The notes beneath the pieces were generated by a model. The model was given only the letters and a program-made list of their open reading frames with translations, did not search any database and had not been told where the DNA came from. Position numbers and translations under genes: made by a program. Shown in pieces: positions 6,021 to 60,759 of a stretch of DNA of 64,000 bases. Each line of letters begins with the position of its first letter. The first letter of the stretch is position 1. This stretch comes from Thalia democratica (taxonomy: Eukaryota): positions 33,852,001-33,916,000 of the forward strand of contig OZ241829.1 of assembly GCA_965202585.1 (NCBI GenBank), given 5' to 3'.

Positions 6021-6796
6021 AAAACTTTTTCTTTTATAGTTAAAGTTAATTTAAAAGTACATTACCGTTAATTTATTTTCATAATGTTTCTAACGTTGTA
6101 TAGGTCAAAGGACATTTAGAATTCCTTTATATCAGTTTAAAGTGATAAAAAGTTCAAACCAGTACTAATTTTTCAACCTTAGATAATGTTGTTAATTTTT
6201 GTGGTCATAAAAATTAAACTAAATTTAACTCGCATGTCCAATTTCAAATTTTTTAATTGTAATGCTTAGAAAACTAAAAAAAAAGTTCCACTTAAATATG
6301 CTTAAAACACTGTTTTACAAGGTGGTATGCTGTAAAACAAAAGTTCTATAAACAACGAAAAAATTTTTTGCAGCTTGAACAAAAAAAGCAAAAAAAAAAA
6401 ACTGTTTGTCAACATGTTTTAAAATAAATTGGTACAGCTAAAAACTCAAGCGTTTAGTGTACTTTAAAATTAATATACCTAACTTTAATTCACTTTTTTA
6501 CTAACAATTTATAAACAAAACTAAGTGTTTCAAAAGAAGTAACAAAAATTTTTGTAAAACATTTTGAAGTTTGATAAAAAATCTAATAAAATAGCTTTTT
6601 TTACAATATGCTTCAATAAAATTATATATAGTAAAAGAGTCACAAAATGATTGCACCTTAGAAATTAATTAAGGTACTGTAACATAACTAAACTTTTTTA
6701 GTAATTTTTATGTACTGTTTTTTGTAGCTTCAGTACTTTCTATTCACGAAAGCAGACTTTATCCACCAACTTTTGACCTCAGTTTTCCAAACTTAC

Positions 6797-8589
6797 TTGA
6801 AAAATAATCTGTGTAGAATTTAGTATGTTAACATTTTTACAGGTATTTTATATATAGATTTTATTTATATTCATTAGTAGAAAAAAAGTTTTACAGTTCA
6901 AAAAACGATTTTTTTTTAGCTTTTTAGATGAAACTCGTGCTATAGTATATTGAACGACAAAAAAAGACGCTTAACATATTTAGTCCTAGGACCTGGTACA
7001 CGAAGAACCTTTCGGTTATCGAGTCGCACACCACGGATACCTTTTAACGTCTTATCCAGGACAGTTGTTTAGATAACTAAAACTAACAAACTTTACTGCA
7101 TTTAGTCAATACCTTATAATTGGAAACATTCCATTTTTACTAAACATAGTTTCTGAAGTTTAATTTTAATTTTCATAGGTAATTAGCAAATCAAAGTAAA
7201 ATTGAATTAAAGTTATTATTTATAGTTTTTTTTTTCGAACCAAATCGTCGAATCATTTAAAGTATATTAACAAAAAATAAAACTGGATAAGCATTTAAGT
7301 TTTCTTATTAAAACTTTTTTGTGTTAATAACTCTAAGTAAAACAACACATTGCACCAAAAATTGATTTTATTTTTAAACAATTTTAAAAACTTATAAACA
7401 ATCTATACTATACATATTATAAAATTCCTTGGAGATTAATTCAAATTATACATACTACATTTTAATGATAGTTTATGCTTTAAGTAAAAAAAAATACAGC
7501 TTATATCTAGAGACATAGTTGAAATTACTTTTATAATATAAGGCTTTGAAGAATAAATTAGTTTTGAACAAACAAATTTGATTTACCTGAACTGTTGCTT
7601 GGTTGTTATTTCCTTTTTCAAAGATAAAATACTTGGTCATAAAGCTTTGTTTGCTGGATTTAACTGAAAATACAGTATTCTTTTTAAGCTAATGTTTAAA
7701 AAAAGGTATCTTTCTATTTAATTTCCTTAATTTAAAAAAATAAACTTACTCTTTTTTGTAAACATGTTCTTAATAGAAATTAAAAGGTATTCACCATTAA
7801 AACCAAAGCTAAAATAATTTGTTGTCTTTGTTAGTTTCAAGGAGTTAAACTTATTAAAAGTTAAATGTGTTTTTTTACCATGAAAGTTTTAACTAAAAAT
7901 TTCGTTGAACATTTAATGTTCAGAAACATTTAGTTTAAGATATTGATACCTTAAAAGGTTATAAACTATTATTTGTATTTATGTAAACTGTACATTTGTA
8001 AAAGTACTTACAACTGACGGCAACCCTTCTAATTTAGATGATTCCTGTAAAATAAAATAAAAAGAAATTTTTTTTTGATAGTTTACTCAGTTGAGAACTT
8101 TTAAAATAGATTAAGTAAAGTTTGCAAAAAGTATTATAAAAAAAAAAAGATAAATAACCATGAAAAAAATAGAAAAATTTAGAATCAAAATTTTCTTATA
8201 ACAACTTTAGTGTAAATACAAATGTTTGCTTTAAAGTGTTTTCAAAGTTTATCTGTATTTTGCTAAAATAAGTAAAATTAAGATGTATAGTAAGTTTTTT
8301 TAAAATACTTTTTAAAAGTTGAAGATGCCATTTTTTCAAAATCAATCTTAAAAGATTAACTTGAGTAACAATTAAGCTAAAATGAAAAAAAAACATTTTT
8401 TTTATTAAATCTTATAAAGTATTTATAAAATATAGCTTCTTTATTTAGAAACAGAAGTACTCGTATAACAAACTGTTGAAGGTTTTACAAAAAAATTAGT
8501 CAAACCTGCTCTTTTGCTAGTTTTTTAGCATCTTCTATCAGTTGTAATACGTTTATCAATCGGGAAAACAAGTCGTTAGACGATTTTTG
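6797..8589 (-). CDS. Putative C-terminal extension exons 10-16 of the fucosyltransferase gene (function unknown)
   Basis: Phase-compatible GT-AG exons 8506-8589, 8012-8044, 7795-7849, 7587-7663, 7456-7477, 7113-7152, 6797-6808. They encode QKSSNDLFSRLINVLQLIEDAKKLAKEQ-ESSKLEGLPSV-FNSLKLTKTTNYFSFGFNV-KSSKQSFMTKYFIFEKGNNNQATVQ-HKLSLKCK-TMFSKNGMFPIIR-LFF. Donors are GTTTGA, GTAAGT, GTGAAT, GTAAAT, GTATGT, GTATTG, GTAAGT. No homology recognised. Confidence 0.55.
6951..7061 (-). mobile_element. SINE-like repeat family copy
   Basis: Reverse-orientation copy including the 5' TGTCCTGGATAAGACGTTAAAA segment; lies in an intron of the predicted FUT extension. Confidence 0.7.
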
Positions 8590-8907
8590 CTGAATAGAAA
8601 TATTTTCATGTTAACTACCAATGATAAGTTTTATTTCTATACATTTTAAAACAGTTCAAAATTCTTTAAAGTTTTGCATCCGATCGTTTTCAATTATTAG
8701 TGCAAAAAAAAGGCATTAATGAGAATAATCATACAGGTATAACAATTCGAGCTATACTGAGAAGTAAATAGCTTTTTATACTTGAATGAAAAAAACTGGT
8801 ATGTACACAACTAAATTTCATGTCAAAATTTAAGACATACAGCTATTAAAACAGTTTTATCAAAATTAAAGTACATTGAAAACTACTTTACAAAAAAAGT
8901 AAAAAAC

Positions 8908-11900
8908 CTCAGGCTCCAGACACTCTTCAGCTTCGCCGTAGACCCAGTCGTGGATCGACCCGACGACCATCCGCTCCCCGAACTCGCTCTCACCGTTGGC
9001 GAACTTCCTCCCCACCCTCAGATCCCCGTCATCTTGCAGCTTCAGGCACAGCTCGCACTCGCTGTTGGGCAGGTTGAAGCCGAACAGGTTCTCGGGGGGG
9101 TCCAGCCGCCACCTGAAGTACTCCATGTAGGCCTGGTCGTTCAGGTCGAGGTAGTGGAGGTAGTCGATCAGGTTCTTGCGGTCCGGGTAGTCGTCGACGA
9201 AGATGAAGCTCTTCCTCGGTAGCACGGCTTCGTAGCTTTCCTTTGGTTTTTTATTTTAAACTCGCACAACTGTATTGTCTTGGTTATTATAACTACGCGT
9301 TATTGAGTTTTAAAAGTTTTAAAACAGGGTTTCCCAAACTTCTTTTTAAAATTGCCCCCGTTAAGAAATAAAAATGGCTTTTGCCCCCTCCAACAAGATT
9401 ACCATTTAAAAAACCTAAGACCTTTTTTTTTTTTGCTTTTCATCTGCAATTCAAGAATATCTAGTGTAAGTTTCAAAATTACTAATAAATACACCTGAGA
9501 CTTTTTTTTTTGCTTTTCATCTGCAATTCAAGAATATCTAGTGTAAGTTTCAAAATTACTAATAAATACACCTGAGACTTTTTTTTTTGCTGTTCATCTG
9601 CAATTCAAGAATATCTAGTGTAAGTTTCAAAATTTTAAAATTCCCCCCTCCCCTTTTGCCCCTTTACTAATTATTGCCTTCCAACTTACTAAAATCGCCC
9701 CCAGGGTGGCGGTACTGCCCACTTTGGGAAACCCTCTTTTAAAGTGTAAAGCTATGCGTTAATAATTCTGAAACAGCTAGTTTAGATTTTAAAGTGTGCA
9801 GAGTAATTTTTCTCCAAACCTTAGTGGCACCGTAGACAACCGGCACTGCGCCGCTGGCGAAGCTCCGGAAAAGTTTCTCGGTAATGTAGTCTGTGCAGTT
9901 GTGCGAGTTTTCGAAAGCAAGGTAGAACTTGAAAGTGGAAATGAACTTTTCAACTTTTTTTCCGGTAAAGTCGCTACGAGGACTCACTTCAGGGGCGTCC
10001 GGAAAACATTTTCCTCTTTATTTTTGTTTTTTGTTATAAAAAAGTTTTATACGATTAAATTAATGAATTATTGAGGAGGCTTTTGATAATTTTTCATGTG
10101 AAAACAAAAATTTTAATATTTAGAAATAGGTTATAATTTACTTTACATTCAACTAAATAACATATAATGTGTTATAAACTATCAGTATATATCAATTAGA
10201 ACAAATTAACTGCATACATAGGAACTTTTATCATAGCGAGTTAGTACGTATTATTGCAACATCTTGGTAACATTTAACCGCCCACCTGCGGTCCACTTCC
10301 AGACCCATGTCGACCAGCTTCTGCACGAGGTCCCATCGCTTGGTGGCGCCGTGCGATTTTTTGCAGTTGGAGACAATCCACGTGACCAGGCCGGTCTTGT
10401 TTCGCACCAGTGCTTCCAGCGCCGCACCAGCATCAGGGTTTTCGTCCCTGATGGTTTTGGCGACGTCGTAAATTTTGCCGTACGGAAAGTACGCGCTGCT
10501 GTCCCGTCTGAAAAAGTGTATTGAAATAGGGGAACTTTAAGGTAGATAATGTAATTGAGCTCCTAGGATAAGTTGGGTACGTTGACGTTGTCGCTTGAAA
10601 CCGTTTGTGAAGGAGTTTTTATTAAAACGTAACTGAAAGTATGTAACGCACGCACTTGAAAAATAATTCAAAAGGAAACAATAAACATACTCTGAACGCT
10701 AACAAAGGCATGAATGGTATTCAATGGGCTTTTAAGTACTTTTTGATTAAGTGTTAAATATAAACGATAAGATATGGGTGGTGTGAATAATGATGGTTTT
10801 TTATAAGCAAACTAACAAATAAGATTATTTAGCAACCAAAAAAAAATTGTGTTCGTAACATAAGCAAAAAGTTTAGTTAGATTATTTTTACTACCATTTT
10901 TAAGTCATTTAAAACTATTTGGTGAAAATATGATGATAATTAATAACAGTATAATTTTTTTATTAAAATCGGTTTAAAATTATTTGATTTTTTCACCTAA
11001 ATTAATTTATAGATTGTTTGATAAAGGTACAAAAGCTACTCAGTAAAACAAAAACTACTAACAAGGGGTATTTTTTTGCTGGGTTCTAAGTCGTTTTTTC
11101 ATTAAATTAACAAACTAAGCTACTTAATATCAAAATTTTAAAAAGTTCTGGCATTATGTTATTTGATTAAGAATTATTTTGATCTGCTTTCTTTGACTAA
11201 AAACGTTTTTTTTAATAAATAAATACATTATTAAAGTAGTATTTGTGTGAAGTATACTTAGTTTTTGATCACTTAGACAAAACTAGTATTGTTTTATTTT
11301 TCTTCTTCTGTTAGACTTACTTTTGAGCTATGCAAGTATTAATCATTTATCTAACTAATTTTACTCATTCTGTTTAAAACTAATACTTTTATATACTAAA
11401 ACAGGATGTGGTAAACTGCAGCCTGTAATGTACTTTTTAGCTAGATTTTTTTTTTTATTCAACATAAAAAAAATATTTTTGTTTTGCAAAAGCTTTCATT
11501 TAGGCTCATAATCTGATAATTAGTAATTAGAAGAGCCTTCTTATTGCATATTTTTTCACAATTATGGTTTAGAGTAGTACTTTTCTAACAACTACTAAAA
11601 TTTTTCTAGATAGGTGCGGCCCACGAAAGACTTTATTCTAAACAGTGCAGCCCGCGAAAAAAGTTTTCTAGGAAAACTGACTCGTTACTTATAAAACGAT
11701 ACCGACCCCTGTACTAAAAAATAAAAATAAAATAAAAACGTTATTTGGTCTCAAAAGTATATATACTTATACAAATACGATTAAACATTGCATAAAACCT
11801 TGGTGACAGTGTCAAATTGAAATATTCATCGAACTGTCTTAGATCACTTTTTTGGTGTTTTATTGTTGCAGCACTTTCCAAAGTCAGAAACCCGTAGTAT

Positions 11901-14900
11901 TGACCTGGTAACCTTTATACATATTTACATGCATTAATCTATTAAAAATAAAAATCATAAAAATTTGTAAGTTGCAACGTTTAATAACTTTAAAATAAAT
12001 TTTTAAAATATGCAAACTAGTTTAAGTTGTTTTTATATTCGTGATAATCTTACATTAAAATAAATATAATTCAAATAGTTCATAACTAAAGAATCTTTTA
12101 AATACGTCTTGAACATTTAGGTGTTACTTTTATTGTAAATATTAAAACTATTGAAAATTATTTTGTTTTTTGCAGATCAAAAGAAAAAAAAAAGCAGTAT
12201 ATAGTTTAATAAAGTTTTCTAACATATAAATAACTCAATAAAAAGTAACTACCTTGGTTTCAAAGGTAAGGTAAATTTCTTAAGCTCTTTGAAGTGAAAT
12301 ATAACAGCTTTTGTTCGGGTATTTTCAATCTGCAACAATTAGTAAAATATAAAAACTAAAAATGCAAAAGTTAACAATTTACATTACTATTTTTTAAACA
12401 ATTAGACACTGTTTGTTTCACAAAAGTAAAAAACTAAAAAAAAATCGTTATCCTAATCTATAAATTTAAAAAAAATTTTAAAATAAGGAAACTTAAAAAA
12501 CAGGATGCATGGTTTCGAAGTAAAGTAATTATAGCTCATGTGTAAGTGTATAGTTAATAGTGTATCAGTTTAACAATTTAATAATTTAGTTATATAATTT
12601 ATGGAACATAAGCACTATTACGCAAATTTTATTCACCTAAATATGAGTGATAAATACACCATTAAACGATTATATTAAAAAAAGGTATATAAAAAGTGCA
12701 TTACTTGACAGATTGCAGTTTTTCATAAAAAATAGTTTATAACTTATAAAAAAAAACTTTGTGGTCAAAAAACATAAACTGTTACAATTTTTTGTTTGTT
12801 TCATGCTTTAGATTTAAAAGATATTTTATGTTAGGTTCCTGTACAGCCCATGAATTTGGCTTAAAGTTTACGGAAAAAAACGCAGTATTGCAAGCGTTAA
12901 AACTTTGCGACATGACATATTTTATTATTAAACTACTTGATGTCATTGAAAAAAAATCTGATGAAAACTGAAACTTACCAGGGTCCGGTCATCCGTGACC
13001 CGGCAACCACCGCATTCAGGGGACAAGATTTGGTTCCTTCCTTCGCCAAACGGTCGATACCAGTACAGGATGTTCTGAAAGATTTCATTAATATTCGGCA
13101 CTCGACTATTGAGTTCAAACGTAGCTAGCTGCATTTTCGCACGCAGAAGATTTTCGTTAGCATAACTACTTTGTGAGAGTTAAAACTTTGTCAAATATTA
13201 AATGAGTTTGACTAGTAAAAGTTAGGTGTTACTTAACAGTAAATTATTTCGCTTAGTTTTATATTGTAAATTTTCTGCAAAAAAAAAATCATAAGCGTAT
13301 AAAAGTCGCTTAAGTTAAGTGTGTAAACTAGAATGAAAATTGGTAAACGTTTACAAATTTTAAATTTATTTGTACATCATCAAAATACCTACTTAGAATT
13401 TAGTTAGAAAGTTATTTATAGTTTAAGTCCTTCAACTAATTTTTTATGTTTGTTTGTAAAATAACTTTATTTTTAGTCAGGATAAAGCTTAAAAAACAGA
13501 ATTAAACTATGTGTAACTTAATAGTCCTTTTCTAACAAAATCTATTTTAATACTGTATTTATAAATATTATCAAACAATCGACAGCATTTCTTTTGTAAC
13601 GCAATGTTTAAGAATAATTTGCTAGGTTAAAGTGTCATAGTTATACTGTAGGTTAGTGAAAGTTAGCTAGATTTTACGAACAAAGTTACTAACGATTGGT
13701 ATACTTTCCTCCACAGTTTTCGAATCAAATATTTCCTGAAAAATTTTAGTATGTATTAATTACACAAATATAACCTCAAGTGTGTAAACTTAAGTTAAGT
13801 GTGTAAACTAGAATAAAAATTGGTAAACGTTTACAAACTTTAAATTTATTTGTACATCAGCAAAATACCTACTTAGAATTTAGTTAAAAGGTTATTTATA
13901 GTTTAAGTCCTTCAACTAGTTTTTTATGTTTGTTTGTAAAATAACTTTATTTTTAGTCAGGATAAAGCTTAAAAAACAGAATTAAACTATGTGTAACTTA
14001 ATAGTCCTTTTCTAACAAAATCTATTTTAATACTGTATTTATAAATATTATCAAACAATCGACAGCATTTATTTTGTAACGCAATGTTTAAGAATAATTT
14101 GCTAGGTTAAAGTGTCATAGTTATACTGTAGGTTAGTGAAAGTTAGCTAGATTTTACGAACAAAGTTACTAACGATTGGTATACTTTCCTCCACAGTTTT
14201 CGAATCAAATATTTCCTGAAAAATTTTAGTATGTATTAATTACACAAATATAACCTCAAGTGTGTAAACTTAAGTTAAGTGTGTAAACTAGAATAAAAAT
14301 TGGTAAACGTTTACAAACTTTAAATTTATTTGTACATCAGCAAAATACCTACTTAGAATTTAGTTAAAAGGTTATTTATAGTTTAAGTCCTTCAACTAGT
14401 TTTTTATGTTTGTTTGTAAAATAACTTTATTTTTAGTCAGGATAAAACTCAAAAACAGATTTAAACTATGTGTAACTTAATAGTCCTTTTCTAACAAAAT
14501 CTATTTTAATACTGTATTTATAAATATTATCAAACAATCGACAGCATTTATTTTGTAACGCAATGTTTAAGAATAATTTGCTAGGTTAAAATGTCATAGT
14601 TATACTGTAGGTTAGTGAAAGTTAGCTAGATTTTACGAACAAAGTTACTAACGATTAGTATACTTTCTTCCACAGTTTTCGAATCAAATGTTTCCTAAAA
14701 AGTTTTAGTATGTATTAATTACACAAATATAACCTTCCGCGTAAATTCGCACGTTAAACGTAACCAAAAGTGCGAAGTTGTGCGAATATAGCAGATTTTA
14801 CTTTAGAACTTACTTTAGAACTAGTACTGTTCATCAGACATATTTGTCACTGTTTATATGTTTATCTTTTGTTATTTCAAATTTAAATCTAAAAATAAGA

Positions 14901-60027: not shown

Positions 60028-60759
60028 ATGAGACTCCCATTCTCAACTTTCTTGTTCAGAAAACAATTCAACTATGAAAAGGCATACAACTTGCAAAAGC
60101 TGTTAGTTGAAAGCAAGCTGAAAGCCACTGGGCCAACAAAGCCAATAGTGCTGCTCGTGGAGCATTCCCCAGTGTACACCATAGGCAGAAGAAGTCACCT
60201 TTACAACGAGGCTGAAGAAAAGAGGCTAAATGATCTTGGAGCTGACTTCTTTCGAGCGGACAGAGGAGGCTTGATCACTTTCCACGGACCAGGTCAGCTG
60301 GTTGCTTACCCAATATTCAGTTTGGACGAGCAGAGGTATGGGGTTAAAACATACGTGGACATGCTGGAAGAAACAATAATTTCCTTGCTTCACAAACAGT
60401 TCAATATCAAAGGTGAAAGGTCCCCTCACACAGGTGTTTGGGTGGGAAACAACAAGATTTGTGCTATGGGAATAAGTGTGCACAGGCAGAAAAAAGTTGT
60501 TTCTCATGGTCTTGCTCTCAATTGCAACACCGACATGAAGTGGTTTTCTCACATAGTTGCTTGTGGTATACACGGGAAAGGTGTTACTTCCTTATCTATA
60601 GAAAAAGATTTTAATGTATCATTATTAGATGTTGTTGATCCTTTTGTTCAAAGTTTTGAAAGCATTTTTAAATGGGAATCTCAGAACAAAACTGTTGAGC
60701 TGGACTCAAATTTAGACAACTTGGAAATTTTAGACATTATATCAAAACGCATTAGCTAG
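60028..60759 (+). CDS. LIPT2: Octanoyl-[ACP]:protein N-octanoyltransferase (lipoyltransferase 2, LipB family), single exon, 243 aa
   Basis: LipB motifs: LLVEHSPVYTIGRR, DRGGLITFHGPGQLVAYPI, TGVWVGNNKICAMG, SHGLALNC, WFSHIVACG..GVTSL. Confidence 0.95.
   Translation: MRLPFSTFLFRKQFNYEKAYNLQKLLVESKLKATGPTKPIVLLVEHSPVYTIGRRSHLYNEAEEKRLNDLGADFFRADRGGLITFHGPGQLVAYPIFSLDEQRYGVKTYVDMLEETIISLLHKQFNIKGERSPHTGVWVGNNKICAMGISVHRQKKVVSHGLALNCNTDMKWFSHIVACGIHGKGVTSLSIEKDFNVSLLDVVDPFVQSFESIFKWESQNKTVELDSNLDNLEILDIISKRIS

Follow-up and report, generated by a model that had tools for sequence, protein, structure and literature searches.

In this study, we analyzed a 64,000-nt stretch of the Thalia democratica genome (GenBank assembly GCA_965202585.1, contig OZ241829.1, positions 33,852,001 to 33,916,000 of the forward strand; hereafter the window) and focused on a minus-strand gene whose protein runs on, through splicing, past the point at which most of its relatives end. 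The gene encodes one of the GT10 (alpha-1,3/4-type) fucosyltransferase paralogues. This identity follows from matches to the Pfam family PF00852 (Glyco_transf_10) on three exons and from collinear alignment with full-length GT10 homologues. Two exons score 53.1 and 61.3 bits, above the gathering cut-off of 23.9, and a third reaches 19.9 bits, under the cut-off when taken alone. Homologue-guided mapping and a frame check gave a spliced catalytic model of six exons in frame without a stop. In blastp, this model aligned collinearly with three homologues (P0023, P0020, and P0018) over residues 20–363, with 37–41% identity and E values of 1e-68 to 1e-82. The alpha-1,3-fucosyltransferase motif (F..FENS....Y.TEK) is present in the model as FYLAFENSHNCTDYITEK. 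The product is predicted to be a GDP-fucose-dependent fucosyltransferase.

RNA evidence came from one marine metatranscriptome run of 2016 (X1), available as contigs and covering part of positions 6400–12350. Record 5 of this run (668 nt) joins 10507–10286 to 10015–9819 and to 9239–9015, confirming the structure of the catalytic exons. Over the 77-nt exon at 12253–12329, the X1 depth is 12.4 at position 12285, and the depth of the bin corresponds to cover of about 79 nt. The spliced model begins about 50–100 residues short of its homologues; its first exon may begin further upstream, with the in-frame ATG 13134–13132, which adds no hydrophobic segment. In the 108-residue translation of the last catalytic exon, the PF00852 domain ends at about residue 70.

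The sequence changes abruptly at the end of this last exon. After ...CLEPE at 8908, the minus strand reads GTTTTT, and GC content falls from 0.605 (9001–9200) to 0.255 (8601–8800), that is, within 400 nt; non-coding GC is about 0.2–0.25 in this very AT-rich eukaryotic genome (assembly, 802 Mb). GTTT-type donors were seen at further RNA-confirmed introns of the same gene. On the minus strand, X1 record 4 (375 nt at depth 14) matches 9013–8908 (106 letters, 2 differences) and then continues directly at 8589–8505 (85 letters, 3 differences). The GAG|GT at 8908 serves as a splice donor, and the junction 8908|8589 is shown by this contig. In the bin 8788–8986, the X1 depth corresponds to exactly the 79 nt of 8908–8986, with zero cover beyond the donor. 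These results confirmed several elements of the original prediction, namely the GT10 identity, the GC drop at an AG|GTTTTT donor, the first junction, and a protein extended past the end point of most relatives.

Two metagenome contigs of a close relative in the European Nucleotide Archive (ENA) (L016 and L017; protein P0001, 95% amino acid identity) were aligned to the window, and both end about 100 nt past the donor. Over the 332 nt of the last catalytic exon, the relative shows 8 mismatches and no gap columns, whereas just past the donor (8802–8907) 107 aligned columns hold 8 mismatches and 4 gap columns. Both contigs retain the GAG|GT donor. The gap columns include a 1-nt frame-shifting indel, so that the read-through peptide differs between the two organisms. 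The stretch after the donor thus appears to diverge in the way expected for an intron.

Downstream of the first junction, the RNA evidence points to two more short exons. The 33-nt exon has a strong acceptor (a pyrimidine run followed by CAG) and a GTAAGT donor. The X1 depth at 8018, inside this exon, is 14 and equals that of record 4, while the depth is 0 at the flanking intron sites 8319, 8327, and 8454–8475, as it is in intron bins and at all intron sites listed. The depth is again 14 at position 7597 in the 77-nt tail exon, and the depth of the bin 7594–7792 corresponds to 70 nt at depth 14; therefore, cover starts at the predicted acceptor at 7663. From this bookkeeping of depth beyond the first junction, record 4 most simply reads 8908|8589, 8506|8044, and 8012|7663. 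As the 55-nt segment that the original prediction had placed between the 33-nt and 77-nt exons is skipped, translation enters the 77-nt exon in phase 0 and meets a TGA after 8 codons. By the same depth accounting, the tail comprises 28 + 11 + 8 = 47 amino acids from three exons. Another 50 nt of the exon follow the stop, X1 cover stops near 7587–7582, and about 75 nt of record 4 stay unplaced. Because of this unplaced sequence and the end of the cover, at least one further junction probably follows in the 3' untranslated region (UTR); candidate acceptors for these last letters lie at 7040, inside a high-copy repeat, or at 6808. The coordinates of all mapped features are collected in Table 1.

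Table 1. Exons, intron, and previously proposed segments of the GT10 gene in the window.
Feature	Positions	Strand	Evidence
Coding exon, start of N-terminal GT10 region (NILYWYRPFG...)	12979..13074	-	tblastn of P0018; stop-free in-frame chain; GTAAGT donor after 12979
Coding exon, 77 nt, GC 0.31	12253..12329	-	tblastn of P0020 and P0018; in frame; X1 RNA
Coding exon, 114 nt	11799..11912	-	tblastn of P0018; X1 depth in bin 11773–11971; in frame
Coding exon, 222 nt, start of Pfam GT10 C-terminal domain	10286..10507	-	X1 RNA record 5; PF00852
Coding exon, 197 nt, FENS...YITEK motif region	9819..10015	-	X1 record 5; PF00852, E 1.2e-16
Last catalytic exon (332 nt) with phase-0 end at ...ECLEPE, GC 0.60, GC3 0.90	8908..9239	-	X1 records 4 and 5; PF00852, E 4e-14
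Intron, GT..AG, 318 nt, holds in-frame read-through stop (open reading frame boundary 8866)	8590..8907	-	Exactly this interval is absent from X1 record 4
Tail exon 1 (84 nt; 28 codons), phase 0 at both ends, GC 0.35, predicted amphipathic helix	8506..8589	-	Joined to 8908 in X1 record 4 (record positions 107–191, 3 other letters)
Tail exon 2, 33 nt, 11 codons (inferred)	8012..8044	-	X1 depth 14 at 8018, equal to record 4 depth
Tail exon 3, 77 nt: 8 codons, TGA at 7639–7637, then 50 nt of 3' UTR, GTAAAT donor (inferred)	7587..7663	-	X1 depth
Proposed 55-nt exon, unsupported	7795..7849	-	X1 depth 0 in whole bin 7793–7991
Proposed 22-nt exon, unsupported	7456..7477	-	X1 depth 0 at 7469; bin 7395–7593 holds only ~12 nt of cover at depth 14
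Proposed 40-nt exon, unsupported	7113..7152	-	X1 depth 0 at 7114 (one site)
Proposed 12-nt exon, at most part of a 3' UTR exon	6797..6808	-	X1 depth 0 at 6813, above 0 at 6744 and 6757 from unassigned contigs

The original prediction had chained seven tiny exons after the catalytic domain. The AG..GT segments of 84, 33, 55, 77, 22, 40, and 12 nt are indeed present, and together they form a stop-free frame of about 108 amino acids. However, only the 84-, 33-, and 77-nt exons are supported by RNA, with the 55-, 22-, and 40-nt segments at zero depth where tested. The same holds for the later junctions: 8506|8044 is supported by depth, whereas 8012|7849 is contradicted by the absence of cover over the 55-nt segment. 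Instead of about 108 amino acids, the RNA-supported tail has about 47, the phase-0 reading of the 77-nt exon having run into its TGA. To judge the chain itself, 20 composition-matched shuffles of the same 2.1 kb were scanned for stop-free chains from the same donor, allowing at most seven AG..GT exons of 12–120 nt each and introns of at least 60 nt. All 20 shuffles permitted a stop-free chain, of 513–644 nt; the real 2.1 kb permits 650 nt, and the proposed chain measures 323 nt. Since every shuffle gave a longer chain, the seven-exon chain alone is no evidence. For the sampled RNA, the seven-exon model is largely refuted.

The tail exons have a GC content of 0.30–0.39 and a GC3 (hand count) of about 0.30, against a GC3 of 0.90 in the last catalytic exon. 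Two conserved upstream exons are likewise AT-rich (GC 0.31 and 0.38), so that coding and non-coding sequence cannot be told apart here by composition alone. The hydrophobic moment over tail residues 1–21 is 0.45–0.48 and the net charge is +1. No transmembrane segment was found in the 47 residues, where the highest 19-residue Kyte–Doolittle mean is 0.61. These values suggest that the tail forms a single, moderately amphipathic helix that leads into a short proline-containing linker and a short end.

Composition also varies within the gene and among its paralogues. Exons of this one gene span GC values from 0.31 to 0.60. GC3 of the last exon is 0.90 here, 0.93 in the closest paralogue (L002), and 0.46–0.70 in other paralogues, against a background of ~23% GC. 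GC-biased gene conversion and codon-usage selection are both possible sources of the high values.

We then compared the C-terminus with those of relatives. The genome itself contains at least 64 GT10-like matches. Among the ten closest paralogues covering the whole last exon, nine carry ECL plus at most one residue and then a stop; in L002 (62% identity), ECLE is followed by GTGGGG. The best full-length homologues stop 1–3 residues past residue 363 of the model, and most library GT10 representatives that align through the ECL motif stop likewise soon after it. In both DNA and protein searches, the 84-nt exon had no second copy in the genome. A tblastn search of the tail against 20 kb around L002 returned only chance-level matches, with no homologous exon in the ~15 kb downstream. 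The 47-residue tail shows no similarity to any tail among the 155 GT10 homologues collected. In Joint Genome Institute (JGI) metagenome scans, neither a degenerate pattern for the 84-nt exon nor relatives of the last catalytic exon gave a match. A protein search with the 108-residue last catalytic exon retrieved only six ENA genomic open reading frames (ORFs) and no transcript-derived protein with the tail. Rfam gave no match over 6400–10000. We regard the tail as lineage-specific and probably young. Separately, about 15 short GT10-like matches lie outside the window, at 10.62–11.72 Mb of C5 in the same genome; they cover only residues about 24–71 of the last exon, and most contain an internal TAA. 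In appearance, they are pseudogenes or fragments derived from GT10 genes, in a dispersed or tandem arrangement.

Taking the observations together, we consider it likely that the stop codon was replaced by ECLEPE and a GT donor, and that splicing onto three short exons gives the enzyme a 47-residue tail. In this model, the ancestral stop, which lies just after the C-terminal ECL in nearly all relatives, would have given way to ECLEPE and a working donor at 8908|8907, from which the mRNA would be spliced onto the three AT-rich tail exons (8589–8506, 8044–8012, and 7663–7587) and the tail would end at the TGA at 7639–7637. That the gene carries an unannotated spliced extension is confirmed. Direct evidence covers the GT10 identity, the three catalytic junctions upstream, and 8908|8589; tail exons 2 and 3, and with them the length of 47 residues, come from depth accounting, and the helix and any function are predictions. 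The tail would consist of an amphipathic helix of ~24 residues, the proline-containing linker, and eight more residues, and it would be lumenal, given a type II Golgi enzyme. If it has a role, the likeliest is self-association of the helix or its packing on the catalytic domain; equally, non-coding DNA may have been recruited recently into a tail that is close to neutral. Our best guess is that the helix acts in the lumen by self-association or packing; near-neutrality of the tail has a substantial chance.

Several points weigh against this interpretation. The junctions 8506|8044 and 8012|7663 are not listed directly and depend on the depth of one contig and on bin arithmetic; the 184 letters of record 4 past 8505 are not itemised, and its last ~75 nt have no place yet. 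In the bin 7992–8190, the X1 depth exceeds what the 33-nt exon explains; the surplus may come from other AT-rich contigs, an attribution made without proof. The RNA derives from a single metatranscriptome and from an organism ~2–3% diverged from the window, and contigs show no abundance and may drop rare or alternative isoforms. The orthologue comparison was confined to a close group. Between the window and the relative, the last catalytic exon has 5 non-synonymous and 3 synonymous changes, so that dN/dS is not low. Furthermore, mapping found no upstream exon with the transmembrane anchor that is expected within the N-terminal 50–100 residues of the homologues.

A bolder version of the stop-loss model is conceivable but doubtful. 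It holds that, after duplication of a GC3-rich paralogue, loss of the stop created a donor that captured three de novo mini-exons from AT-rich non-coding DNA, and that the new lumenal amphipathic helix serves oligomerisation or substrate targeting. Eukaryotes would then have evolved, independently, an equivalent of the C-terminal helices found in Helicobacter GT10 enzymes.

Alternatively, the exons could be real in RNA and the tail functionless, arising from a recent stop loss with exonisation of non-coding sequence or from splicing into a downstream non-coding unit, with the transcript possibly a target of nonsense-mediated decay. The low GC3 of the tail relative to the catalytic exon, the single occurrence of the 84-nt exon in the genome, the dissimilarity of the tail to those of the collected homologues, the lack of a homologous exon downstream of the closest paralogue, and the probable presence of at least one junction after the stop all fit this alternative. 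However, the frame stays open over all three junctions through clean helix-forming sequence, and the sole difference listed in the 33-nt exon for organism B, a second organism seen in the DNA runs, is synonymous (C>G at 8018). The TGA is 50 nt from its exon end, which is within the range that nonsense-mediated decay usually tolerates. We regard a functionless tail as unlikely, while noting that it overlaps with the stop-loss model rather than excluding it.

It is still less probable that the main protein ends at the 8866 stop by read-through of the donor, with 13 extra residues, and that the spliced tail is a minor product or noise. The reading frame 8866–9225 is open, and an intron-retaining form might have been among the rare or alternative forms that contigs drop. 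Nevertheless, the X1 contigs give no support for an isoform ending at 8866, their cover stopping exactly at the donor, and the 1-nt indel just past the donor breaks the read-through frame in relatives, so that the stretch is not conserved as coding; intron retention may occur as a minor form. Finally, a 108-residue lumenal module built from all seven tiny exons is scarcely credible: the stop-free chain exists and includes the three RNA-supported exons, but the zero depth over the 55-nt segment and at 7469 and 7114, the equal or longer chains in every shuffle, the closure of the final 12-nt "exon" at another donor without a stop codon, and the background-like GC of the later segments (0.08–0.25) all speak against it.

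In the annotation of this genome, the first in-frame stop beyond 8908 should not be taken as the end of this GT10 gene. As a point of method, tiny AG..GT exons chained together in DNA of 23% GC are worthless without RNA. If the stop-loss model holds, the locus offers a clean, datable case in which a conserved enzyme has acquired a C-terminal tail through stop loss and recruitment of non-coding sequence, with a sharp compositional contrast between the old exon, at GC3 0.90, and the new ones, at about 0.30. Should the tail prove functional, it would be a new accessory module in an otherwise very uniform enzyme family.

Other features were observed in the window. Positions 9318–9743, within the intron between 9819 and 9239, hold an element resembling a miniature inverted-repeat transposable element, in which terminal inverted repeats of 21 nt, 95% complementary, enclose a 77-nt unit repeated 2.7 times; its depth in the DNA run of about 1e5 indicates a very high copy number, and it occupies the same site in L016 and L017. 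At about 6965–7063 lies a short, GC-richer repeat resembling a short interspersed nuclear element, of extreme copy number, with a summed contig depth of 6e5–8e5 in the DNA runs and abundant in the RNA run too; many contigs break at 6964/6965 and 7062/7063, and the repeat has no Rfam match. Immediately upstream of the first GT10 exon that was mapped, a 480-nt unit is repeated in tandem over 13309–14735 (3.0 copies with 98% identity). On the plus strand, 60028–60759 is an intron-less ORF of 243 amino acids that we take, by eye from its sequence, to be a candidate octanoyl/lipoyl transferase (LipB/LIPT2-like).

Compared with known systems, the gene shares with the animal GT10 alpha-1,3/4-fucosyltransferases (FUT3-7/9-type and invertebrate FucT) the PF00852 domain, the FENS...YITEK motif, and a collinear alignment. 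Most of these enzymes stop 1–3 residues past ECL, whereas this gene adds PE and 47 amino acids from three extra exons. The premise of the original prediction that GT10 enzymes end shortly after the catalytic domain is correct for most relatives but not for several distant ones: six proteins of other organisms (P0028, P0038, P0040, P0045, P0056, and P0095) carry 46–119 amino acids after ECL, including a hydrophobic stretch of transmembrane type and a basic end. The tail described here has no such stretch, and blastp found no similarity between it and tails of the P0040/P0095 kind. By eye, P0028, P0040, and P0095 resemble one another directly after the ECL motif, and proteins of this kind may be a GT10 subgroup that is anchored in the membrane by the C-terminus.

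The GT10 alpha-1,3/4-fucosyltransferases of Helicobacter pylori offer a further comparison. They end in C-terminal heptad repeats (DDLRxNY-type) and two amphipathic helices, and this tail serves membrane anchoring and influences stability and structure (PMC4202792). The tail of the present gene differs from theirs in that it lacks tandem DDLR.NY heptads and any sequence similarity, is predicted to contain one helix rather than two basic ones, and would lie in a lumenal eukaryotic setting. The likeness, which we regard as one of analogy only and not of homology, would lie in the shared architecture of a catalytic domain followed by a non-catalytic C-terminal tail with an amphipathic helix, here a predicted one.

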